Positions 5,360 through 58,595 of a DNA stretch of 64,000 bases are shown piece after piece (within the stretch, counting starts at the first letter, position 1; the number at the start of each line of letters is the position of its first letter). The translations under genes were made by a program, and so were the position numbers. Source of the stretch: Neoconidiobolus thromboides FSU 785 (Eukaryota > Fungi > Entomophthoromycota); assembly GCA_025603075.1 (NCBI GenBank), contig MU626363.1, positions 11,459-75,458 of the forward strand, in the 5' to 3' direction. The notes under the pieces are model-generated. The model was not told the DNA's origin. It searched no databases and saw nothing but the letters and a program-made list of their open reading frames with translations.

Positions 5360-7404
5360 ATGAATAAATTGTTTTATATAACAATACCGCTATTGATAGC
5401 AAATATAACATTTGGTTTAGACTGTCCAAATCCAACAGACAAATGTCGATATAGGGGTAAAAGATTTTTACCTTCCGATCCCAACGCTCCCGAATGCTGG
5501 TCATTTTCATATGATCGTTGGCAATGTACTTACAAAGTGGATGGTAAATGTGATAAAGCTTATGGCCAAATTGACATTACTGAATGTAATGTTCCACCAC
5601 CACCTCCAACTCCAGAATGTCCAAAAGCTACTGACGCTTGTAAAACTGGAGATATCCTTTGGAAGGCAGATAGTCCAAATGCACCAAAATGCTGGACTAA
5701 AAATCCATCTGTTCAATTTGGATGGATTTGTAGAGGAGACTCAGAAGATGAGTGTGATGCTTCAAAAGGTGAAGCTGATCTAACCAATTGTAACATTAAA
5801 CCACCAGTTCCAACCCCAGAATGTCCAAAAGCTACTAATAAGTGTAAAACTGGTGATGTTATTTGGGATGCTAATAGTCCAAATGCACCAAAATGTTGGA
5901 CTAAAAATCCATCCGTTGAATTTGGATGGACTTGTAGAGGAAATTCTGGTGATAAATGCGATGCTTCAAAAGGTGAGACTGACATCAAAACCTGTAATAT
6001 TCCTCCTCCAGCTCCAACCCCAAAGTGTCCAAAAGCTACCGATTTTTGTAGAAATGGTATCGGATCCTGGAGAGCTAATGATCCATACTCACCAAAATGT
6101 TGGTCAAAAACCTCTTCAGGGTGGAGATGTCAAGGAGATAGTGATGCTAAGTGTGATACATCTAAAGGTGAGGTTGACCTTAAAGCATGTAATATTCCAC
6201 CACCAACTCCAGAATGTCCAAAAGCTACTGACTCTTGTTTAGTTGGTGATATTGCATACCGTGCAGATGATCCAAGTGCACCAAAATGTTGGAGTAAATC
6301 TTCAGCATCTCAATTTGGATGGTCATGCTATGGAAGTAGATTTACAACTTGTGATGCTTTAAGAGGTGAAGTTGATTTAGGTACTTGTGGTATCACTCCA
6401 CCAGTTCCAACTCCAGAATGTCCAAAAGCTACTGACTCTTGTTTGGTTGGTGATATTGCATATCGCGCATCTGATTCNNNNNNNNNNNNNNNNNNNNNNN
6501 NNNNNNNNNNNNNNNNNNNNNNNNNNNNNNNNNNNNNNNNNNNNNNNNNNNNNNNNNNNNNNNNNNNNNNNNNNNNNNNNNNNNNNNNNNNNNNNNNNNN
6601 NNNNNNNNNNNNNNNNNNNNNNNNNNNNNNNNNNNNNNNNNNNNNNNNNNNNNNNNNNNNNNNNNNNNNNNNNNNNNNNNNNNNNNNNNNNNNNNNNNNN
6701 NNNNNNNNNNNNNNNNNNNNNNNNNNNNNNNNNNNNNNNNNNNNNNNNNNNNNNNNNNNNNNNNNNNNNNNNNNNNNNNNNNNNNNNNNNNNNNNNNNNN
6801 NNNNNNNNNNNNNNNNNNNNNNNNNNNNNNNNNNNNNNNNNNNNNNNNNNNNNNNNNNNNNNNNNNNNNNNNNNNNNNNNNNNNNNNNNNNNNNNNNNNN
6901 NNNNNNNNNNNNNNNNNNNNNNNNNNNNNNNNNNNNNNNNNNNNNNNNNNNCAATTTGGATGGACTTGTCAAGGAAATTCGAATACCAGATGTGATTTCT
7001 CAAGGGGTGAAGTTGATATAACCATGTGCACATTTCCTCCAGTTCCCCCAACTCCAGATTGTCCAAAAGAAAAGGACTATTGTCGTAATGGTTATTCTTA
7101 TTTTTATGCTTCTGATCTCAAGGCACCTGCTTGTTGGAGAAAGACAAAACTTGGATGGACATGTAATTGGAAGAAAGGATACACCTGTGATAAAGGTGAA
7201 GTAGATCTCACTGTTTGTTTCCCATATAGACGCAGAAAGTGCCCAAAAAAAAACTATGATAGTTATTCCCACTATGGTTCAGGTTATGGCTCGGGATATA
7301 AGCCAGGATATAATACACCTAAACCTGGTTATGGGTCTGGCTATAAGCCTTCTTATGGCTCAGGCTATAATCCAGTATACAATCCAGTATACAAAGGTCA
7401 TTAA
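5360..7404 (+). CDS. secreted six-cysteine tandem-repeat protein, paralog 1 (spans assembly gap) with Gly/Tyr-rich tail
   Basis: Signal peptide MNKLFYITIPLLIANITFG; 63-68 aa units CPKATD-C..AP.CW.K..GW.C.G....CD...GE.D...C.PPP; after the gap the repeat resumes (QFGWTCQGNSNTRCDFSRGEVDITMC) and runs into ORF 7024-7404, stop at 7404; no intron seen. Confidence 0.88.
6478..6951. other. assembly gap (474 N) inside the repeat gene
   Basis: N run; the coding frame differs on the two sides, so the gap size is an estimate. Confidence 0.99.
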
Positions 7405-13895: not shown

Positions 13896-15020
13896 ATGAA
13901 ATTGAAATATAGAAGGATTAAACCTGCTATTTATCATTTAAACAAAATACGAAGCAATTCAACATTGTCCACCATTGACAAGGCATATTTTACTTTATCC
14001 CCATTTTATAAAGCAAGCAGGAATCCGATAGTTCTATGTCATGGTAAGTAGGTATAAAAAATATGTTAAGTTATTAACCCAGATTTTAGGCCTATATGGT
14101 TATGATAAAATAGCATTTGAAAATTTCCCTTATTTACAAATTAATTATTGGCAAGGGATCGCAGAATCACTAAAACAGTTAGGGAATGAAGTTATCATTG
14201 CAAAGGTACCAAGGTAATTAACAATTTGATTTAATATTACTATTATAAATAGTTTTATTTATTAATCAAGTTTAGAACGGGGAGTATTGAGGAGAGAACG
14301 AACCAATTAAATTTATTTTTAGAAAGGGTAGTGTCCGATAGAGAAGTTAATATTATTGGGCACAGTATGGGTGGGTTAGATGGTAGATATTTGATAAGTA
14401 AAGTAAAGAACAAAAAATATAAAGTATTGAGTTTGAGTACAATATCTACCCCACATTATGGATCTCAATTTATGGATTGGTGTCAAGAAAACTTAAATTT
14501 AGGGAGAAAGAAGAAAGAAAATGAAAACCCAATCTATACGGACATAAATACAAACCGGCCTTTACTTAATAAATTACTGGTTAACCTGGATGCCCCCGCT
14601 TACTATCATTTAACTACTGATTACTGTAAAAACATTTTTAATCCTAATACCCCGAACTGTAATGATGTGAAATATTTTTCATACAACGCTTATATTGAAA
14701 AAATGAATAAATTCGCTTTACTATATTTACCATGGAGCATTATCAAAGAAAGAGCCGGAAAGAATGATGGTATAGTGGCACTCAACTCTTCAGTATGGGG
14801 TGAGCATGTAGAAACAGTGGAAGCTAGCCACTTTGACTTGGTATCAAGATATCGTTGGATTTATGCTTTTTTATCACTTTTGGGTTTCCAGGATCCAAGA
14901 TATCATCATAATCCAAAACTTCCTTTGCCTAAGTCTTTGTTTTTAAACCCTAGTCCAAATTTAGACACCATTGAGTTTTATTTGAGAATTTCTAATTTTT
15001 TGTATTCGAAAGGGTTTTAA
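13896..15020 (+). CDS. triacylglycerol lipase, TGL2/lipase-2-like alpha/beta hydrolase, paralog A (3 exons)
   Basis: ATG at 13896; introns 14044-14089 and 14214-14275; PIVLCHGLYG, GHSMGGLDGRY nucleophile elbow, TPHYGS, NDGIV, SHFDL. Confidence 0.9.
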
Positions 15021-20765: not shown

Positions 20766-21641
20766 TCATTTTAATTGTAATTCTAAATTTTCTTTTTTCA
20801 TAGTTTTTTGAATCCATGGAAGGTAGCTTCTGACTTTAGCATAAGTACCAGGAACACCAGGTTCTGCGCATTTTATCCCATTGGAAACAACACCTACAAT
20901 TGAATATTGCCCATCTTCGTCTGACTTCATTAAGGGACCACCAGAATCTCCTTGACACGCATCTTTTCCTCCTTCTTTAGTACCAGCGCATATAGAAAAC
21001 TTCTCGTCCAAAGAAGGCCATGTTTTTTTACATGTTTTCGTATCAATAATTTTAAGACTAACCTTTAACAAGGAATTTGACATTTGACCTTCAAACTTAG
21101 TATGTCCCCAACCAGCAACGATAAAAGATTCATCTTTATAATTCTCTTCAATATCGCTAATTTTTGGTACAATTTTCCCATCTTTAACTTCTTCTTTTAA
21201 TATAAAAATACCAATATCATCTAATAATTCAATTCCCTTTTCGCTATAATTCCCATGTTTGATTGTTTTCAAAACTTTGTATTCTTCTCCATCAACCCCA
21301 TCCAGATCATTTTTTCCATACCCAATGTACAAATCTTCCATTTCATACTTATCTGATATACAATGTGCTGCTGTCAAGACTACTTTCTCATGAATCAAAG
21401 TACCACCACACATATGTCCACTATATTGATTTCCAATTGATACTAGCCATGGAAATTCACTTTTGTTTGCTTTTACTCCTCCCACTATTCTACCATCTGA
21501 TGTGTTTGGATTATCAGTTAGACTCTGCTGAATTGTTTCAAGACTTGGCTTAACCTTTGCGTACCCTCTTGGGTCAACTCGATTTAGTTTACTTAGACAT
21601 CTGGTAGCTAAAGCACTTGCAATTATCTTTATTAGCCGCAT
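20766..21641 (-). CDS. trypsin-like serine protease (S1A), intronless
   Basis: R|IVGG activation site, TAAHC, DDIGIF, DACQGDSGGP (Asp in the S1 pocket), PGTYAKV. Confidence 0.95.
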   Translation of the reverse strand: MRLIKIIASALATRCLSKLNRVDPRGYAKVKPSLETIQQSLTDNPNTSDGRIVGGVKANKSEFPWLVSIGNQYSGHMCGGTLIHEKVVLTAAHCISDKYEMEDLYIGYGKNDLDGVDGEEYKVLKTIKHGNYSEKGIELLDDIGIFILKEEVKDGKIVPKISDIEENYKDESFIVAGWGHTKFEGQMSNSLLKVSLKIIDTKTCKKTWPSLDEKFSICAGTKEGGKDACQGDSGGPLMKSDEDGQYSIVGVVSNGIKCAEPGVPGTYAKVRSYLPWIQKTMKKENLELQLK

Positions 21642-23790: not shown

Positions 23791-25425
23791 ATAGAAGTGT
23801 CTTCTATAGATACTCAAATTGATGATGCTTTTAGCGTCCATAACAGCGAAAAACAATTAGAAAGTCAAGCTTCAATAAATCCTTCCAAGCTCGATCAACC
23901 AAAAGTTGAAGTATCAAAAACAAGATTCCTTTTAATTATGTTAGGTTTGGTTTTGTCAATATTTGTAGCAGCCCTAGATACTACTATTATTGCTACTTCT
24001 TTAGCAAACGTTACCTCTGATTTTAATGCTTTTGACCAAGTAACTTGGGTTACTACTTCTTATTTATTATCTTCTACCGCTTTCCAACCATTATATGGTA
24101 AATTTTCTGATATCTTTGGTCGACGTGATGTTATGTTATTTGCCCTTGGTGTCTTTTTAGTTGGTTCAGTACTATGTAGTGCTGCACAAACTATTGAGGT
24201 TTTAATTATTTGTCGTGCTATTGCTGGTATCGGTGTTGGTGGTCTTATATCTCTTTCAGTTATTATTATATCCGATATTGTTTCACTAAGGAAGAGGGGG
24301 TTATATATGGGTATGGTTAGAGCTAATTTTGCTGTTGCTTCAGTTGTTGGTCCATTGATAGGTGGTGCTCTTACCGAAGAAGCTAGCTGGAGGTGGTGTT
24401 TTTACATTAACATTCCAATTTGTCTACTAGCTATGTTTGTTATAGGCTTTTTTCTTCGTTTACCTACATCTAAACAAAACATGAAAGAAAAGTTATCTAG
24501 AGTCGATTATTTAGGTTCAGCCACCTTACTCATCTTTACTTCACTTATAGTATTGGGCTTAAATTGGGGTGGACAACAATATCCCTGGAACTCTACAGCA
24601 GTTGTTGTTTCGCTCTGTTTAGGTATTGCCTTCTTACTCCTTTTTATTTTCTTCCAATGGAAAGTATCTAAAGAGCCAATCATACCAGGGCATGTTTTAG
24701 TTCGTAATGTTATATCTGCAGATTTCACAGCCTTCTTTAATGGGTGTATGCTTTTTTCAACTGTTACTTATTTACCATTATATTATCAAATTGTACATGA
24801 GGAATCATCCATTAACTCAGCCTTAGAACTTTTGGCTACCATGTTGGAGGTAGTCTTCTGCTCAACAGGTTCTAGTATTTTTATTGTTAAAACTGGTATC
24901 TATCGCCCTCTTTCTATAACTGGTGCTGGTATTGGTGTTATTGGCACTTGTCTTATGGGATCTTTAATGAGGGTTGATATTTCAAGGGCAGAATTGATAA
25001 TTTTTTCTTTGTTTATCGGATTGGGCATAGGGCTTTGTATTCAAGTCAACACAATTGCATCACAAGTAGCTGTTGATATGAAAGATGCAGCCATTGTAAC
25101 ATCATTGGTAAGTTTTTCACAATCTTTAGACGGAGTAATAGGAATGGCAGTGTTAGGAGCAGTATATCAAAACGTATTAGCTTCCTCCTTAGCTAAAAAT
25201 GCACCAACTGTCAATATTGGATCTTTATTTCAATCATCGACTTATATTCAAACTTTGACACCAGAACTTAGAGCCGTAGTAGTTCAATCTTATGTTGATG
25301 GTTTCCACTCTATGTTTTTAACTGGGATTGCTTTCTTTTCTGTCTCATTTATAGCTCCACTTTGTTTAAAGCATATCCCTTTAAAAAATCGCGGGCCTTT
25401 AGTTCCACAGGAAAATTTAAAATAA
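23791..25425 (+). CDS. MFS drug:H+ antiporter, DHA2 (14-TMS) family; in-frame ATG missing, possibly decaying
   Basis: AALDTTII, YGKFSDIFGRR, GPLIGGAL..WRWCFYINIPI motifs; intronless ORF; the expected start reads aaacATAgaa (23791). Confidence 0.85.
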   Translation: MEVSSIDTQIDDAFSVHNSEKQLESQASINPSKLDQPKVEVSKTRFLLIMLGLVLSIFVAALDTTIIATSLANVTSDFNAFDQVTWVTTSYLLSSTAFQPLYGKFSDIFGRRDVMLFALGVFLVGSVLCSAAQTIEVLIICRAIAGIGVGGLISLSVIIISDIVSLRKRGLYMGMVRANFAVASVVGPLIGGALTEEASWRWCFYINIPICLLAMFVIGFFLRLPTSKQNMKEKLSRVDYLGSATLLIFTSLIVLGLNWGGQQYPWNSTAVVVSLCLGIAFLLLFIFFQWKVSKEPIIPGHVLVRNVISADFTAFFNGCMLFSTVTYLPLYYQIVHEESSINSALELLATMLEVVFCSTGSSIFIVKTGIYRPLSITGAGIGVIGTCLMGSLMRVDISRAELIIFSLFIGLGIGLCIQVNTIASQVAVDMKDAAIVTSLVSFSQSLDGVIGMAVLGAVYQNVLASSLAKNAPTVNIGSLFQSSTYIQTLTPELRAVVVQSYVDGFHSMFLTGIAFFSVSFIAPLCLKHIPLKNRGPLVPQENLK

Positions 25426-26079: not shown

Positions 26080-29000
26080 CTAGCAAGTTGTTATATCGGT
26101 TTCTGAAGAACTACAGCCATTACGCGAGTTCCTACAAAACCATCCAAAATAAGATTTTGACCAGCATTTAGGAGTACCATAGGAATAGCGATAATAAGAG
26201 CGTCCATAGCTATCATAGCATTTATCGTAATTTGCAGGACAATTGTTAGGAGGTTGAATAGAACAAGTTTTAATATCAACTTGATCTTTAACACAAGAAG
26301 CACCAGATTTAAAGGAGCAAGACCAACCATAATTAGTTTTAGTCCAGCAAGTAGGAACAAATGATTCAGATGCATAGAAATAATAGTAACCATACCAACA
26401 GTAATCATTTTTTGTTGGGCACGTCACAGGTGGTTTTGGAAAAGAGCAGGTTGAAATATCCTTTTCTCCTTTAAGTGCATTACATTGGCCGTTAACTTTG
26501 GCAATACAACTCCATCCATTTGCGTTAGCTGCCCAGCAGCTTGGTGCATTGATACTGCTAGGGCTAAATTGTTGTCCTTGGAAATTACAAATATCGGTGG
26601 AAGTTGGACATTTAGGAACAGGTGGGGGTGAAATATTACATGCCTTAATATCTAATTGTCCTTTAGAATTGTCACATTTAGAGTTAAAGTCTCCTTGACA
26701 ACTCCATCCCGAAGAGGTCTTAGACCAACATTTTGGTGCATTTGGGTCATTGGCTGTGAATCCTGCACTTCCAGAATTACAGGTATCGGTGGCCTTTGGA
26801 CAATCTGGGATTGGAGGTAGAATATTACATGTTGTGATATCTAATTGGTTAATAGTAGCATCACATTTACCATTTGAGCCATTCAAACAGATCCATGTGC
26901 CAGATGATGATTTAGACCAACATTTTGGCACATTTAGATCATTTGCTTTGAAGCTTGTAGTACCAGAAGAACAAGCTTCCGTGGCTTTTGGACAATCTGG
27001 GATTATAGCTGGAGGAATATTACATGATTTAATATCTAATTGACCTTTAGAAATATCACACATGGTATTTAAGTTTCCTTGGCAAATCCACCCAGAAGTA
27101 GTTTTAATCCAACATTTTGGTGCATTTAGGCTGTTTGCAGCAAAAATAACATCACCGGATTTACAGGTATCGATGGCTTTTGGACAATTCGGGATTGGAG
27201 GCGGGATATTGCAAGTTGAGATATCTAACTGACCCTTTGAGGTGTCGCATGTAGGATTAGAATTCCCTTGACAACTCCATCCGAGGGTAGTTTTTGACCA
27301 ACATCTTGGAGCGTTCGGATCATTGGCTGCAAATGTGACATTACCATTTGAGCAAATATCTGTAGCTTTTGGGCAGGCAGGAATTGGTAGAGGAAGGTTA
27401 CACGTACTAATGTCTAATTGGCCTTTTGAGGAATCACAAGCAATTTTAACACTTCCTTGACAGTTCCATCCTGAAATAATCTTTGACCAGCACTTTGGTA
27501 CATTTGGATCGTTAGCAACAAATGTGGAATTACCATTTGAGCAAGCGTCAGTAGCTTTTGGACAAGCAGGGATTGGGGGTGAGATATTACATGTTGTAAT
27601 ATCTAACTGCCCTTTACTAGTGTCACATCCAAAGTTATTAGATATTCCACAGGTCCATCCAGAAGTGGATTTAGACCAACATTTTGGTGCATTTGGATCA
27701 TTAGCGGCAAATACGGCATTACCATTTGAACATGTTTCCACAGCTTTTGGACAAGTAGGAACTGGAGGTGGGATATTACAAGAATTGATATCTAATTGGC
27801 CTTTAGCAACGTCGCATTTAGCGTTAGTAGCTACTTGGCATATCCACCCTGTAGTAACTTTAGACCAACATCTTGGTACATTTGGATCATTGGCCAAAAA
27901 CGTTCTGGTACCAGAGCTACAAGTTTCGGTAGGTTTTGGGCATGTAGGAATTAGAGGTGGAATATTGCAAGTTGATATGTTCAATTGGCCTTTGGTAGCA
28001 TCACAAATATCACTAGCACTTCCTTGGCAAATCCATCCTGAAGTAGACTTTGACCAACACTTTGGAGCATTTGGATCATTAGCTGTAAAAGCTGTAGTAC
28101 TAAAATCACATGTTTCTGTTGGCTTTGGACAAGTGGGAATTGGTGGCGGAAAATTACATGTAATAATATCTAATTGGCCTTTCATGGCATCACATGCAAC
28201 ACCAGCACTTCCTTGACAAACCCAACCAGAAGATGATTTCATCCAACAATGAGGAGCATTTTGATTGTTAGCTACAAATGATTCAAATCCGTTTGAACAA
28301 ATATCAGTTGCTTTAGGACATGTAGGTACTGGAGGTGGAATATTACAAATACTGATGTCTAGTTGGCCTTTTGAAGAGTCGCAAATAGTATTAGTATTCC
28401 CTTCGCAATTCCATCCAGAGGCTGTCTTTGACCAGCATTTTGGTACGTTTGGACTATTCGCGCTAAAAATAAGAGTACCATTTGTACATGTGTCAGTGGC
28501 TTTTGGGCAATCTGGAACTGGAGGTGGGATATTACATGTTGTAATATTCAGTTGGCCTTTATTAATGTCACATCCAGCATCAGTACTTGGTTGGCAAGCC
28601 CATCCTAAATTAGTCTTAAACCAACATAACGGAGCTTTTGGATCATTTGCTAAGAAGGTTTTGGTACTGGAAACACATGTTTCGATTGCTTTTGGGCACG
28701 CTGGAATTGGTGGCGGAATGTTACAAGTAGATATATTTAATTGACCTTTCAAGGGATCACAGACACCACTAATGCTTACTTGGCAGATCCACCCTGAAAT
28801 AGTTTTTGACCAACAACTAGGTGCTGTTGGATCATTAGCAACAAAGGTAGAACTACCATTGATACATGTGTCTGTGGCCTTCGGACAAATTGGAATTGGA
28901 GGTGGAAGATTACAAGCAGTAACGTCCATTTGACCTTTGGCAGCATCACATGAATTATTGATTTTATCTGAACATTGCCACCCATCGATTCCCTTTATCC

Positions 29001-29328
29001 AACATAAAGGTGCTGTTGGATCGTTTGGTTTTAATAGAATGTTATTAACTTTACACACATCTGATACGAGGGGACAAACTGGTTTAGGCGTTGGATTGGT
29101 ACAACTTTTAATATCAACTTGATTAAAAGCTACATTACATATACCGTTATTCCTGGAATAACACTTCCAGCTTGTGCCAACGCTTAACCAACATGGGGGT
29201 ACAGCTGGATCAGTATATTTGAAAGTCTTAAAACCTACTTGACAGGAGTCGGTAGGCAGTGGACATTTTTGAGAAAATACTGAGGTTAGCGCTATTAACT
29301 GTAAAGTTAATAGAATGAAGTTTTTCAT
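26080..29328 (-). CDS. secreted six-cysteine tandem-repeat protein, paralog 2 (17 units)
   Basis: Likely start at the ATG at 29328 (MKNFILLTLQLIALTSVFSQ signal peptide) rather than 29412; 17 consecutive ~63-aa units with 6 Cys each; the last two are Tyr-rich; no TM or GPI tail; intronless. Confidence 0.92.
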   Translation of the reverse strand: MKNFILLTLQLIALTSVFSQKCPLPTDSCQVGFKTFKYTDPAVPPCWLSVGTSWKCYSRNNGICNVAFNQVDIKSCTNPTPKPVCPLVSDVCKVNNILLKPNDPTAPLCWIKGIDGWQCSDKINNSCDAAKGQMDVTACNLPPPIPICPKATDTCINGSSTFVANDPTAPSCWSKTISGWICQVSISGVCDPLKGQLNISTCNIPPPIPACPKAIETCVSSTKTFLANDPKAPLCWFKTNLGWACQPSTDAGCDINKGQLNITTCNIPPPVPDCPKATDTCTNGTLIFSANSPNVPKCWSKTASGWNCEGNTNTICDSSKGQLDISICNIPPPVPTCPKATDICSNGFESFVANNQNAPHCWMKSSSGWVCQGSAGVACDAMKGQLDIITCNFPPPIPTCPKPTETCDFSTTAFTANDPNAPKCWSKSTSGWICQGSASDICDATKGQLNISTCNIPPLIPTCPKPTETCSSGTRTFLANDPNVPRCWSKVTTGWICQVATNAKCDVAKGQLDINSCNIPPPVPTCPKAVETCSNGNAVFAANDPNAPKCWSKSTSGWTCGISNNFGCDTSKGQLDITTCNISPPIPACPKATDACSNGNSTFVANDPNVPKCWSKIISGWNCQGSVKIACDSSKGQLDISTCNLPLPIPACPKATDICSNGNVTFAANDPNAPRCWSKTTLGWSCQGNSNPTCDTSKGQLDISTCNIPPPIPNCPKAIDTCKSGDVIFAANSLNAPKCWIKTTSGWICQGNLNTMCDISKGQLDIKSCNIPPAIIPDCPKATEACSSGTTSFKANDLNVPKCWSKSSSGTWICLNGSNGKCDATINQLDITTCNILPPIPDCPKATDTCNSGSAGFTANDPNAPKCWSKTSSGWSCQGDFNSKCDNSKGQLDIKACNISPPPVPKCPTSTDICNFQGQQFSPSSINAPSCWAANANGWSCIAKVNGQCNALKGEKDISTCSFPKPPVTCPTKNDYCWYGYYYFYASESFVPTCWTKTNYGWSCSFKSGASCVKDQVDIKTCSIQPPNNCPANYDKCYDSYGRSYYRYSYGTPKCWSKSYFGWFCRNSRNGCSSSETDITTC

Positions 29329-30263
29329 TTGAAAGATTCTTTTAGTTATTTTAAAGGGGTTTTGTTTCTTTATATTTATGATTTGGTTGATAAAATTAGG
29401 CTTTAATGGCATTAATATTTAAAGTTGATGTAGGCTATCTTTTTAAGGCTTAATTATTGTGACTTTTTAGTAAGATTTAAAGTGACTGAAATTAATTGAC
29501 AGTTTACTATTTTTAAATTATAATTAAGTTGTTATATTCAGTGATTTCGGAGAAACGTTATATAATTAATTTACTAAAAAATTTATATAATCATAATCAT
29601 AACAAAGATTTAAAATAAAAGATTTAAAAAAATTTAATTACAACTTTAATGTTTCAAAACAGGGGCTTTATAATTTATCGCTTAAATTCCTAATAAATGT
29701 TTAATATTTTTTATTTAAGCCATTTTTTTAGTCTAGAGCTCTAATTTTGAACTATATAAATTAAAATAAATTTTATGATTAGCTTGATCTATAAATAATT
29801 TGAAATAGAATGCCCTTAAAGTAGAGTATAATAACTTTTAGAATAATTTAATTAAATATTATTGTAATAAAGTAAAGATGATAATAAAAGTAAATTAAGG
29901 CGTAATATTGCAAACGCCAAATGATAAGCTGTAAACTACATACCTTGAAAGGCCTTTAACAACAAAATTTTATAATATGAAGAGTAAATTTTATAAATAT
30001 TGATCTTTTATATTAATCTTAAAGAGATTAACAAATATAATTATAGGCATTAACATGACTAAAAATTAAGCTATTATTTATAAGCACTGGTATTTTAGAT
30101 TACTTGTATTTTTTATAACTTTAAACAGAATTAATTTTGAGATCAAAATAGCTATTAATAACTTAAACAAAAAAACATCTCCGTTTATTTAATGGGTATT
30201 TGTTTTTGAAATTCATTATTAAAACAGCAAGACATTATACTTTATATTGATAAAAAATTTCAT

Positions 30264-42364: not shown

Positions 42365-43559
42365 ATGAATCGTAAATTGGCCATTAACTTCAACTTTGAT
42401 ACTATAAAACAGGCTCTAAATATTGTACCGTTTAAATCAACTATCAAAAGCCTACTTAAAGCCACAGTAACTCAGCAAAAAACGAATATACAAGAAAAGA
42501 AAAAAGAAAAGATTAAAGCTAGTCAAAGTATCTATGTATTAAGACCAAATTATAAACCTACTCGCAACCCAGTAGTATTATGTCATGGTAGGCTATCAGT
42601 ATCTCCCATTTTTCTACTAAGCTAATATTTTACACTTTAGGCCTATATGGTTTTGATAAAATAGGTAATAAAATCATTTAATTCACATTCAACTAAAGCT
42701 GAGCTCATTTAAATCAGGTTTTGATAATTTACCAACATTACAGGTACATTACTGGCAGGGCGTAGCTGAAGCATTAGAAAAGATGGGATCGAAAGTAATT
42801 GTAGTGAAAGTATCAAGTACAGGCTCGATAGCAGAAAGAGCACAACAACTTCATGAATTATTAAATAAGACATTACCCGGTCAACAGGTAAACTTGTTAG
42901 GGCATTCAATGGGAGGATTAGATGGTAGATACCTTATTAGTAGAATACCAAATGAAGATAAAAAATATAAAGTAAAAAGTTTGACAACAATATCGACTCC
43001 ACATAGAGGTAGTAGCTTTATGGATTGGTGCAGGGATCATTTAAAAGTAGGTAAAATTTCAAGCGAAGAAAAGATAAAAGATAAACATGAACGACAACAA
43101 TGGTTTGAAAGAGTGATGAGTTATTTGGACGCTCCAGCTTATTCTCACTTGACAACAGATTACTGTAGAAACAAATTTAATCCAAGTACCCCAGATGACC
43201 CTAATGTAGCTTATTATAGCTATAATGCTTATTTAGATAAAATGCATTACCTTTCCTTTTTAAATTTTCCATGGCAAATTATTAATCAAGTGGAAGGTAA
43301 GAATGATGGTTTAGTTTCACTAAAAAGCGGAGAGTGGGGTCAATTAGTTGAGACAGTACAAGCCAATCATTTTGATTTAGTGGTACGCTTCCGTTGGTTG
43401 ACTGCTATTGGGCGAGTGATCGGGTATGAAGATGCCAGATATAATATAAATCCCTCTTTGTCCTTACCTAAAACATTATTATTGAGCCCAGAAACGGAAT
43501 TCGACAATATCGAATTTTATCTGAGATTATCTACCTTTTTACATTGCAAAGGATTTTAA
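42365..43559 (+). CDS. triacylglycerol lipase, TGL2/lipase-2-like, paralog B (3 exons)
   Basis: Introns 42588-42640 and 42665-42717; PVVLCHGLYG, GHSMGGLDGRY, TPHRGS, NDGLV, NHFDL. Confidence 0.9.
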
Positions 43560-47627: not shown

Positions 47628-49199
47628 ATGAATTTATTTATACGTCTATTTTTCCTTTTATTAACTTGTTTAAATATAACTTATAGTTTAAGGTAATACT
47701 AAACTAAACCTATTATTTAATTAATTAAATTTTGCTTAGGGCTATAGCAGCTATAGATTATGAAAACGAGGCAGGAATTAAGCCAATACCATTATTAACT
47801 AATAAATTAGAACCTATGATGGCTGAAGGCAAAGGTTTAATATTTCAACAAAGAGTTGATCATTTTAATTTAAATGATAACAGAAATTTTAGTCAACGCT
47901 ACTATCAAAATGACAACTATTATAAAGTGAATGGACCACTATTATTATATATTGGTGGGGAAGGCAAGTTAGTCTCAAGAAGTAGTGAAAGTGGGTTTAT
48001 AGTAAGGATAGCCCAACAACTTCAAGCTATGATTTATACCTTAGAGCATCGCTATTATGGGGAAAGTAGATTATTTGAAGATATGAGTGTAGATAACTTG
48101 AGTTATTTAAGTAGTCTACAAAGTTTAAAAGATATTGAATCCTTTTTACAAAGCAAAAGAAAGGAGAATCAAAAGGTAATTGTTGTTGGTGGTAGTTACG
48201 CTGGTAATTTAGCTGCTTGGTCTAGAAAATTGTTTCCAAATTTAATTGATGCGGCTTTAGCTTCTTCTGCTCCAGTAAAAGCACTTGGAGATTTTTATCA
48301 GTATGATCAAATTACTGCGATTTCATTTGGTGAAAAGTGTGCTAATATCATTGCTAACTTTACTAAAAACTTGGACACATTATTAAATAGTAAAAACAGT
48401 AATGCAATCTCAAAAGTTAAAGAACAATTTGAATGTCAAAGTGTAATAGATGACACTATGTTTGTATCTGTGCTATCGGATATGTTTGCAACAGCAGTGC
48501 AATATAATCGACCTAATGTACCGTTTAATGTGAATACTGTATGTAGTAATATAGATTATAACATGTCATTCAATGAATATTTAGCATATTTTTCAACTGC
48601 TGCCAAGATTTATTTCAAATCTCAAAATAAATCGTGCTATGATTTAACCTTTATAGATGAAATCAAAGATATCAAATACAATCCAGATAATGCTAACAGA
48701 CAGGTAGATTATATTATTAAGCTGATTATGTGTATATTTATTTATTTACTTTTGTTACATTATATAGTGGACTTATCAAACATGCACTGAATTTGGATAT
48801 TATCAAACAGCACCAAACAGTGGAATAAGTCTAAGGTCCCAAAGATTAACGTATGATTGGATTTATAACACAGTATGCTCTAAGCAACACTTTAGTAAAT
48901 TAATTGGCCCACCTAAAGTCGAAGATATAAATCAAAGGTATGGTGGAAATGAATTAATAAGCAAAGTCATCTATACAAATGGAAAATTAGATCCTTGGTC
49001 TTACTTATCAGTATTACCCAATAAAGACAGCCCCATGAATAACGATATAAGCAATATGAATACAAGTAATAATCTGGTACTTTTGATTACTTCTGCTTCC
49101 CATACTCAAGATCTTTTACCTGATTTTGATAATGATCCCTTAGATTTAAGATTAGCAAGGAGTTTAGTATTAAAAAAATTAGCGGAATGGATAAATTAA
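47628..49199 (+). CDS. secreted serine carboxypeptidase S28 family (3 exons)
   Basis: Signal peptide exon from the ATG at 47628; introns 47693-47739 and 48704-48767; QRVDHF, GGEG, LEHRYYGES, GGSYAG, ASSAPV, WTYQTCTEFGYYQ, NGKLDPW, HTQD. Confidence 0.92.
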
Positions 49200-57497: not shown

Positions 57498-58595
57498 TTA
57501 ATAAAATCCCAACTGATTTTGGTGAAGAGAGTCATATGTAGCAGATGGGAAGTAAGGCTGATCAAAACTTTGATTTAAGTTTGGTTGAATATTATGGGAT
57601 TCTGTTGTAGGTTGGAAGGCATCTATGAAATAATTGTTATTATAATCACTATAATGAGAGTCATAATAATGCTGGTTTTCCAGTGGATCAGAATACCCTA
57701 GGATGGTATCGAATTGTGGAGTTGCACTCAAATGTGGGGATACATTAGCGGAATGAGAGTAAATCATTGGTTGAAATTGGTCATTTGATAATAATAATGG
57801 ACTAGTATCGTTATTCATAAATAGTGTATTAAATTGAGGCATATTATTATTTAGAGTTGGGGTTGCTACATTATCAATCTGTATATCTGGAACAATAATA
57901 GGAGGATTATTGATCTTTATGTCATTATAGTAGTTATTATTTTGATTAAAATTACTCTTGACTACAACATTTGCCAAACTATAGTTATCGCTATTTATTT
58001 GGGTTTTTGAAAATAAGTTTATATCAACTGGATTGTTGTTTAATACATGGGCTAAATCTAATTGGAATTTACGTTGGAATTTTAGTATCCATGAGATATT
58101 AGGTGTAAAATTAGGCAAGTTCATTTGTATAGATAAATTATAAGCATAACTTATTATGTCCTCTTTAGTAATATCATTTCTAATCTTAATTAATTGATTC
58201 AGCCCTTCATTTTCTTTGGCTTCATTTCCTCTATAAATCTTTGGCTTTTGGTCAACATTTAATCCATAAGTACACCATTTAAACAGTTCAATTTCTAAAT
58301 CATCAAACTCTCCTTTTCTCAATCTTTTTCTTGAATCATCATAAAAATCCAATGCTCCTTCTGTCACCAACTTTTTATTTAGTAATATTTTGGTTACAGT
58401 ACTCCTTCCTACCTTTAGTCTATTTGCTATAGCTTGATGACTTAACCCTTGTTTCGATAACTCTATTATTAATTTCTTACAGCCTATATCAAGTACCTTC
58501 CTTCTTTTTATCTCACCATCATTTTTCTTATGTGTATTGCTGTTATTGATGCACATAACAGATAAATTATCGCTCAATGACTGCACTGAATCCAT
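57498..58595 (-). CDS. CENP-B/pogo-type double-HTH DNA-binding protein without DDE domain
   Basis: SHQAIANRLKVGRSTVTKIL (psq/CENP-B HTH1), RKRLRKGEFDDLEIELFKW..ITKEDII..FTPNISWILKFQRK (HTH_Tnp_Tc5-like), then an N/Q/P/S-rich low-complexity tail. Confidence 0.8.
   Translation of the reverse strand: MDSVQSLSDNLSVMCINNSNTHKKNDGEIKRRKVLDIGCKKLIIELSKQGLSHQAIANRLKVGRSTVTKILLNKKLVTEGALDFYDDSRKRLRKGEFDDLEIELFKWCTYGLNVDQKPKIYRGNEAKENEGLNQLIKIRNDITKEDIISYAYNLSIQMNLPNFTPNISWILKFQRKFQLDLAHVLNNNPVDINLFSKTQINSDNYSLANVVVKSNFNQNNNYYNDIKINNPPIIVPDIQIDNVATPTLNNNMPQFNTLFMNNDTSPLLLSNDQFQPMIYSHSANVSPHLSATPQFDTILGYSDPLENQHYYDSHYSDYNNNYFIDAFQPTTESHNIQPNLNQSFDQPYFPSATYDSLHQNQLGFY

Follow-up and report, generated by a model that had tools for sequence, protein, structure and literature searches.

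The window analysed here is a stretch of 64,000 nucleotides from the genome of Neoconidiobolus thromboides. A single uninterrupted open reading frame is listed on its minus strand from 26080 to 29412, and a stop-free run of its length, 1110 codons, has a chance probability of ~1e-31 at the given base composition. Translation from the ATG at 29328 gives a protein of 1082 amino acids plus stop, with a predicted size of ~113 kDa. A paralogous gene lies 20 kb away. The features are as follows.

26080-29328, minus strand: complete intronless coding sequence for 1082 amino acids plus stop, consisting of a signal peptide and then 17 six-cysteine units (open reading frame and translation)
29329-29412, minus strand: 28 in-frame upstream codons within the deposited 1110-amino-acid model, probably a 5′ leader and not coding, as paralogue N-termini suggest
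29269-29328, minus strand: signal peptide, amino acids 1-20, the sole hydrophobic segment (translation; paralogue N-termini are alike)
28888-29265, minus strand: units 1-2, a divergent N-terminal cap that clusters with the first units of paralogues (unit comparison)
26611-28887, minus strand: units 3-14, the core array (unit comparison and Tandem Repeats Finder)
26422-26610, minus strand: unit 15, a divergent transition unit (unit comparison)
26083-26421, minus strand: units 16-17, a tyrosine-rich C-terminal cap, kin to the units that end paralogues P0002 and P0008
5360-7404, plus strand: paralogous gene with a signal peptide, at least seven units and a Tyr/Gly/Lys/Pro-rich tail

The start at 29328, proposed in a preliminary description of the locus, is favoured over that of the deposited model because all paralogues open directly with the signal peptide. 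One lysine separates the hydrophobic segment of 20 residues from unit 1. No other hydrophobic window is present in the 1082 amino acids, and the protein stops at its last cysteine, the sixth of unit 17; thus there is neither a transmembrane segment nor a GPI signal. The C-terminal hydrophobic attachment signal of GPI-anchored adhesins is absent from the 17-unit protein; neither Pir nor any other known motif for linkage to the wall was detected in it, and no enzyme domain was found. Plus-strand open reading frames within the repeat, at 27524-28216, 28265-28744 and 26750-27043, were set aside as antisense artefacts of a stop-poor repeat. A sequence search for a promoter motif common to both window paralogues gave AT-rich chance words only.

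The units lie back to back, with starts at residues 22, 85, 148 and so on to 1030. They are 63 or 64 amino acids long, apart from the last two, of 60 and 53, and Tandem Repeats Finder independently gave a period of 189 nucleotides, or 63 codons. The module proper comprises ~55 amino acids, and the linkers are proline stretches of eight residues. All 102 cysteines of the protein are in the units, exactly six in each. Also invariant in 17 of 17 units, together with cysteines C1, C8, C25, C35, C43 and C55, are P2, P23, W26 and W33. Every unit displays the spacing C-x6-C-x16-C-x9-C-x7-9-C-x9-11-C with a proline after the first cysteine, a tryptophan after the third and an aromatic residue two positions before the fourth. 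The more general family signature is C-P-x5-C-x16-C-W-x6-aromatic-x-C-x7-9-C-x5-D-[IVL]-x2-C. The preliminary description had depicted a secreted beads-on-a-string protein of 17 six-cysteine units after a signal peptide, with no transmembrane or GPI tail, and the translation, the cysteine count and the hydrophobicity bear this out: the signal peptide is followed by 17 proline-linked units only. The unit consensus given there equals the one recomputed over the 17 units.

The two ends of the array differ from its middle. Cap units at both termini are conserved between paralogues, and the middle has expanded independently in each. Identity among units 3-11 is 67% at the nucleotide level and 62.5% at the amino-acid level, and units 3-13 group as a clade within this gene. 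The distribution of tyrosine is polar, as 15 of the 17 tyrosines of the protein are in units 16-17.

Between units, dN is 0.28 and dS about 1.5, a dN/dS of about 0.19. Saturation of the synonymous sites marks the units as old copies, and together with the low dN/dS it implies that the gene has been kept by selection. At 41 conserved columns pN/pS is 0.12, versus 0.95 at 22 variable columns, which suggests that scaffold residues are strongly constrained and that the loops drift almost neutrally. Variable positions are scattered through all loops, with no single reactive-site loop enriched. The array provides a worked example of an old tandem repeat that retains an exact unit length.

The single RNA run listed for the species contains a fraction of 0.00 of the sampled gene words. 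Stage-specific expression would account for this, and a silent gene would do so equally well. A repeat frame that is silent or decaying and now serves no function would also agree with the lack of RNA-derived fragments of the protein in protein collections, but such an explanation is highly improbable given that a frame of 1082 codons stays open in a genome of 27% GC and that all 102 cysteines are retained despite saturated synonymous sites. In addition, DNA runs labelled as other organisms carry 86-93% of the gene's words, and paralogues and orthologous members are retained in four genera.

A profile of the unit was scanned against 1.84 billion proteins and only about 20 true relatives were detected, with profile E values of 1e-135 to 6e-4. 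The named ones all belong to the Entomophthorales: paralogues in N. thromboides, and proteins of Entomophthora muscae, Massospora cicadina and Conidiobolus coronatus, annotated throughout as 'hypothetical protein'. Three word-indexed protein searches, with the whole protein, an alignment of two-unit proteins and a four-unit piece, added no further relatives, and no literature on the family, its locus tags or run SRR18067301 was found. Judged by these sequence scans, the module family is restricted to Entomophthorales. Its members range from single-unit proteins of 81 amino acids, through small two-unit proteins of 129-148 amino acids, to one of 18 units. Every full-length member, the 17-unit protein included, has a signal peptide followed directly by units, and no other domain occurs in any member. 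Long paralogues in the same genome, KAI9295939 (1190 amino acids, 18 units) and KAI9297756 (765 amino acids, 10 units), are only 27-29% identical to the 17-unit protein. The paralogue at 5360-7404 is broken by an assembly gap (N run 6478-6951), so that its count of at least seven units is a lower bound. Family-wide, C1, W26 and C55 are found in 100% of units, C25 in 99%, P2, C8 and C35 in 98% and an aromatic residue at position 33 in 94%; conservation outside the cysteine and proline scaffold is limited to three aromatic positions and one acidic residue.

The preliminary description had suspected an undescribed domain family, unlike CBM1, CBM18, CFEM, hydrophobin or EGF patterns, and had proposed a unit profile search and a Foldseek comparison of a predicted unit structure as checks. 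The suspicion held. With the whole protein and 85 family units, Pfam searches at E values up to 10 assigned no family, their matches being single, scattered and due to chance; there was no match to CBM14 (PF01607), CBM18 (hevein), CBM1, CFEM or hydrophobin, and the EGF-like model matched one of the 85 units at E 0.087, a chance level. Among PDB sequences, a profile search matched none at E values up to 10. Two confident AlphaFold unit models (pLDDT 85.9 and 84.9) share the same five strands, and the module is predicted to be mostly beta. Fold searches with these models in six libraries, including PDB, AlphaFold DB, Swiss-Prot models, ESM Atlas and the viral BFVD, yielded nothing significant. 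The best matches among AlphaFold DB clusters, with E about 1 and TM 0.50-0.59, are leads only; they comprise 'TNFR-Cys' proteins of oomycetes and, from a fungal 'chitin-binding type-4' protein, the C-terminal module. The best score of an ESM Atlas feature search, 0.71, is below the meaningful level. A likeness to kringle, FN2 and thrombospondin type-1 repeat domains, suggested by the motif 'P-x-C-W ... W-x-C', was dropped because neither Pfam nor fold searches matched them. Together, the lack of a Pfam match and of a significant fold match and the confinement of relatives to Entomophthorales argue that the module is an uncatalogued, lineage-restricted domain family.

The same searches bear on a carbohydrate-binding function. 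The arrays might represent a multivalent lectin, a new family of carbohydrate-binding modules that would hold chitin or another glycan through Trp26, aromatic 33, aromatic 15 and Asp51. With equal reserve, the consequence would be a high-avidity grip on insect cuticle or peritrophic chitin, or a coat that hides or protects the fungus's own chitin. The three aromatic positions and the acidic one are the sole family-wide conserved sites outside the scaffold, the module resembles CBM14 in size and in its six cysteines, and a ligand of periodic structure would be well matched by units of strictly constant length. Two leads point the same way: the match to the 'chitin-binding type-4' C-terminal module, which is non-significant (E 1.4, TM 0.55, rmsd 2.9 over 54 residues), and a peritrophin-A cluster at 0.64 in a language-model search, a lead only. 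Nevertheless, a lectin is somewhat unlikely. No Pfam carbohydrate-binding model is matched at the threshold above, neither Foldseek nor VIA-align recovered a solved carbohydrate-binding module structure, CBM14 included, and fold searches with the unit models gave no match to the Tachycitin/Avr4-like fold of CBM14. An invariant tryptophan in a disulfide module of 55 amino acids may simply belong to the core. Of the interpretation offered in the preliminary description, the undescribed family and the secreted array stand; the chitin- or glycan-binding, wall or adhesive role stays a proposed function, no similarity to a carbohydrate-binding module having been detected.

In five or six informative units cysteines have been lost jointly, which suggests the disulfide pairing C1-C6, C2-C4, C3-C5. 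C1 and C6 are missing together in units of C. coronatus and E. muscae, and C2 and C4 in two N. thromboides units. Kunitz-type inhibitors are paired in the way that the losses in these few units suggest for the module. With the module size, this putative topology brings to mind a host-directed effector: a multi-headed inhibitor or decoy acting against serine proteases of the insect phenoloxidase cascade or against immune receptors, in which the variable loops would give each unit its own specificity. Kunitz inhibitors also occur as arrays, loop variation upon a fixed scaffold is near-neutral, the two-unit members resemble small secreted cysteine-rich effector candidates, and a trypsin gene is nearby. 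An effector of this type is decidedly unlikely, however. Kunitz/BPTI (PF00014) is matched neither by profile HMM, in the protein or the 85 units, nor by fold, and the same is true of Kazal, TIL and pacifastin by Pfam and fold searches. Variable positions are in all loops and not in one reactive-site loop, a pN/pS of 0.95 signifies relaxed constraint and not positive selection, and the tyrosine-rich cap would be left unexplained.

The reading preferred here, with a rough probability of 0.45, is that the protein is a non-catalytic extracellular scaffold or adhesive of the spore, conidium or infection-stage surface. Were each unit closed by a C1-C6 disulfide, and the remaining cysteines paired C2-C4 and C3-C5, the chain would form a proline-rich thread carrying 17 rigid beads ~2.5 nm apart. 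The end fixed in wall, glue or cuticle, by cross-linking or by sticking, might be units 16-17 here and the Tyr/Gly/Lys/Pro-rich tail in the paralogue nearby. The conserved tryptophan, aromatic and aspartate positions could either make up the mini-core or provide, unit after unit, a contact site of low affinity, with chitin as one conceivable ligand.

Genes near the locus encode trypsin, lipase-like hydrolases and an S28 peptidase, secreted enzymes of a kind that is typical for pathogens of insects. The genes around two of the paralogues offered no hint as to function. Counted for the scaffold or adhesive reading are the architecture, secretion, purifying selection, tyrosine polarity, conserved caps and secreted-hydrolase neighbourhood. 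Also counted are the restriction to Entomophthorales, the lack of other domains in members, the reproducible models, the joint cysteine losses, the composition of the paralogue tail and the absence from the RNA run. On the other side, no wall-anchoring signal is recognised, there is no fold or sequence likeness to an adhesin, wall protein or carbohydrate-binding module, and the tyrosine-rich end may carry another meaning. A review (PMC8588673) describes the adhesive material of these fungi as undetermined, which is likewise counted for this reading. A more far-reaching proposal, unlikely as it stands, is that the unit has a disulfide-rich fold that is truly new and that founded a chitin-binding, cuticle-binding or adhesive family invented in Entomophthorales. 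In that case the arrays would be the proteins behind the sticky coat or glue with which discharged conidia, or the dying host, are fixed.

Entomophthoralean fungi are important natural pathogens of insects and are known to manipulate host behaviour. The module family is well defined, lineage-restricted and amenable to structure modelling. Comparative work on these fungi has been based on domains from Pfam, CAZy and MEROPS (PMC11105155), and proteins such as the 17-unit array therefore go unseen. Should the module bind cuticle or chitin, or form spore glue, it would offer a molecular handle on adhesion and add one more fold to those that bind carbohydrates or act as adhesives; failing both, it still represents a clean new domain family for databases.

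Several known systems show comparable designs. CBM14/peritrophin-A arrays, as in insect peritrophins and the Avr4 protein of Cladosporium, are secreted and consist of six-cysteine modules of ~60-65 amino acids with conserved aromatics and Pro- or Thr-rich linkers. The Entomophthorales units are alike in size, six cysteines, aromatics and tandem layout, but differ in cysteine spacing and do not match PF01607. Kunitz/BPTI domains have six cysteines paired C1-C6, C2-C4, C3-C5 and occur in tandem arrays. They and kringles resemble the present module in the six cysteines, in the tandem arrangement and in a pairing, proposed here from few units, that would tie together the termini of each bead, whereas cysteine spacing and predicted secondary structure differ and neither Pfam nor fold searches link them. 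Dictyostelium spore coat proteins and apicomplexan oocyst wall proteins are secreted, non-enzymatic arrays of small disulfide modules, and walls of this kind are assembled by disulfide and tyrosine cross-links. The array design is alike, and the language-model search placed clusters of this kind among its nearest, but their scores of 0.57-0.65 are below the meaningful level and no homology was detected. The paralogues and relatives differ from the 17-unit protein in having 1 to 18 units and, in C. coronatus, units lacking C1 and C6, but they are built from the same six-cysteine module and, as in that protein, the units come directly after a signal peptide.

The window is A + T-rich (22-38% GC, typically ~27%), and the region at 26-30 kb is higher in GC, at 33-38%. 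An uninterrupted minus-strand open reading frame spans 26080-29412; at this base composition, 1110 stop-free codons would arise by chance with a probability of ~1e-31. Translation from the ATG at 29328 yields a protein of 1082 amino acids. The deposited model comprises 1110 amino acids, starts 28 codons upstream of this ATG and is a single-member cluster in NCBI. Position 29328 is the likelier translation start, since a signal peptide directly opens all paralogues. Two family genes are present in the window:

26080-29328, minus strand: gene of the 17-unit protein; N-terminal hydrophobic signal peptide of 20 residues, then one Lys, then the units
5360-7404, plus strand: neighbouring paralogue, split by an assembly gap of 474 N (6478-6951)

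Plus-strand open reading frames within the repeat (26750-27043, 27524-28216 and 28265-28744; 97-230 amino acids) are not genes; they are antisense by-products of a stop-poor periodic sequence.

The preliminary description had proposed a secreted, beads-on-a-string protein of 17 tandem six-Cys units following a signal peptide. This architecture is confirmed by the translation, by the Cys count (102 residues, six per unit and none elsewhere) and by a 189-nt period detected with Tandem Repeats Finder independently of translation. Units start at residues 22, 85, 148 and so on to 1030; 14 of them are 63 or 64 amino acids long, and the final pair measures 60 and 53. The unit consensus computed over the 17 units is that originally read from the sequence, with C1, P2, C8, P23, C25, W26, W33, C35, C43 and C55 (numbered within one unit) invariant. 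The proposed lack of a membrane or GPI tail is also borne out: hydrophobicity over the whole chain reveals neither a membrane segment nor a GPI signal, because the signal peptide is the sole hydrophobic stretch and the chain stops at the last Cys. The mature protein is ~113 kDa with a pI of ~8, and contains 19% Ser + Thr, 10% Pro and 9.6% Cys.

The suggestion that the units represent an undescribed domain family survives searches of Pfam-A, PDB sequences, AlphaFold DB folds and the literature. Pfam-A gives no match to the 17-unit protein except a meaningless one of 16 bits, and when 85 units are scanned with a cutoff of E 10, no Pfam family is matched by more than two. At the same cutoff, the unit profile matches no PDB sequence. 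AlphaFold2 models of the unit are confident and reproducible (pLDDT 85.9 with 23 sequences, 84.9 with 85); both display strands at 7-9, 14-16, 25-29, 32-35 and 49-51, plus two short helical turns (45-47 and 52-54). Against AlphaFold DB clusters, the model finds nothing better than E ~1 (TM 0.50-0.59). Four oomycete proteins are matched weakly in their N-terminal modules, and one fungal 'chitin-binding type-4' protein in its C-terminal module; the latter match is a lead only. No description of the family or its locus tags was found in the literature; the principal comparative study of this fungal group restricts its domain analysis to Pfam, CAZy and MEROPS (PMC11105155). Judged by sequence and predicted structure, the module thus appears uncatalogued and without a detectable fold relative in the Pfam, PDB sequence and fold searches.

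A HMMER profile of 23 units, run against 1.84 billion representative proteins, has only 24 matches at E up to 1e-3, about six of them partial matches to unrelated repeats. The named true matches are confined to Entomophthorales (Neoconidiobolus thromboides, Entomophthora muscae, Massospora cicadina and Conidiobolus coronatus), and three more protein searches add no further relatives. N. thromboides FSU 785 has at least 10 family genes, the paralogues belonging to assembly GCA_025603075.1; they include an 18-unit protein of 1190 amino acids and a 10-unit protein of 765. In every full-length member, a unit directly follows the signal peptide. Some members are clustered: KAI9292912 and KAI9292913 lie side by side on one contig, and KXN67481 and KXN67480 of C. 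coronatus are adjacent genes. The deposited 483-amino-acid model of the 5360-7404 gene probably has too low a unit count, because it bridges the assembly gap as an intron.

Over 98 units, conservation extends to the six Cys, Pro2, Trp26 (100%), an aromatic residue at 33 (94%), an aromatic residue at 15 (63%), Pro23 (71%) and Asp51 (79%), the last followed by Ile, Val or Leu. In some units, cysteines are lost in pairs. The first and sixth are jointly absent from C. coronatus units and one E. muscae unit, and the second and fourth from two N. thromboides units. The C. coronatus pair KXN67481/KXN67480 keeps only C2-C5 and represents a naturally occurring 'open' form of the module. These joint losses, few in number, suggest disulfide pairs C1-C6, C2-C4 and C3-C5. 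If this pairing is right, both ends of each unit would be tied together, and the chain would form a proline-rich thread of 17 rigid beads with ~8 linker residues between them.

The unit copies are old, and the gene is maintained. Mean nucleotide identity among core units 3-11 is 67%, and the closest pair of the entire array reaches only 73.5%. Between units, mean dS is ~1.5, with synonymous sites saturated, and dN is 0.28 (ratio ~0.19); despite this age, unit length is still 63-64 amino acids. pN/pS is 0.12 in 41 conserved columns and 0.95 in 22 variable ones, which is nearly neutral, with no positive selection. In a unit tree, units 1, 2 and the near-terminal 15 group with first units of close paralogues, units 16-17 group with last units of paralogues, and units 3-13 form a separate clade; the tree is short, lacks support values and is suggestive only. 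The array therefore seems to have lengthened through duplication of its middle units, between caps that were conserved. The last unit is closest to the last unit of KAI9293270 (54% similarity), which suggests that this type of C-terminal cap is conserved.

Sampled words of the gene are absent from the only RNA run listed for N. thromboides. Either stage-specific expression or a silent reading frame would fit this absence, but the selection signature speaks against silence, which is very improbable. DNA runs under other organism labels contain 86-93% of the sampled words, so the gene is conserved in other isolates. Complete two-unit members (P0013 and P0014) are found on ~1-kb Logan contigs of run SRR18067301. 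This run may derive from the transcripts of a further entomophthoralean fungus, in which case it would provide the sole hint of family expression.

The neighbourhood is hydrolase-rich and of secretome type, typical of an insect pathogen; the gene neighbourhoods of two paralogues have no informative content. Open reading frames in the window include:

14331-15020, plus strand: lipase/thioesterase-like alpha/beta-hydrolase
20766-21641, minus strand: trypsin, intronless (Pfam E 2e-50)
23797-25425, plus strand: MFS (DHA2/TRI12-like) transporter, listed from a GTG start only
42783-43559, plus strand: lipase/thioesterase-like alpha/beta-hydrolase
47732-48790, plus strand: S28 serine carboxypeptidase
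57498-58595, minus strand: probably a Tc1/mariner-like transposase remnant, because of weak HTH matches of Sleeping Beauty transposase type

Entomophthorales are fungi that discharge sticky conidia. The 17-unit protein is tentatively read as an extracellular, non-enzymatic scaffold or adhesive at the surface of a spore, conidium or infection stage (probability roughly 0.45). It lacks catalytic domains and motifs, and its units combine a constrained scaffold with free loops. Secretion is common to all family members, and the range is that of sticky-conidia fungi. A multivalent chitin or glycan lectin, representing a new CBM, would overlap with the adhesive reading and is a less probable possibility; a host-directed multi-headed inhibitor or decoy is more doubtful still. 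The module would gain in interest if it turned out to be the entomophthoralean glue or a new fold that binds cuticle or chitin.

Secreted proteins built as tandem arrays of small disulfide modules are of a familiar kind. The distribution of tyrosine in this one is strikingly polar: 15 of 17 residues fall in units 16-17 (26083-26421, minus strand) and the other two in unit 1, leaving units 2-15 free of tyrosine. As a scaffold or adhesive, the protein might be cross-linked or stuck by this Tyr-rich end. The neighbouring paralogue at 5360-7404 ends in a low-complexity tail of ~45 amino acids rich in Tyr, Gly, Lys and Pro, which recalls adhesive or cross-linkable proteins.
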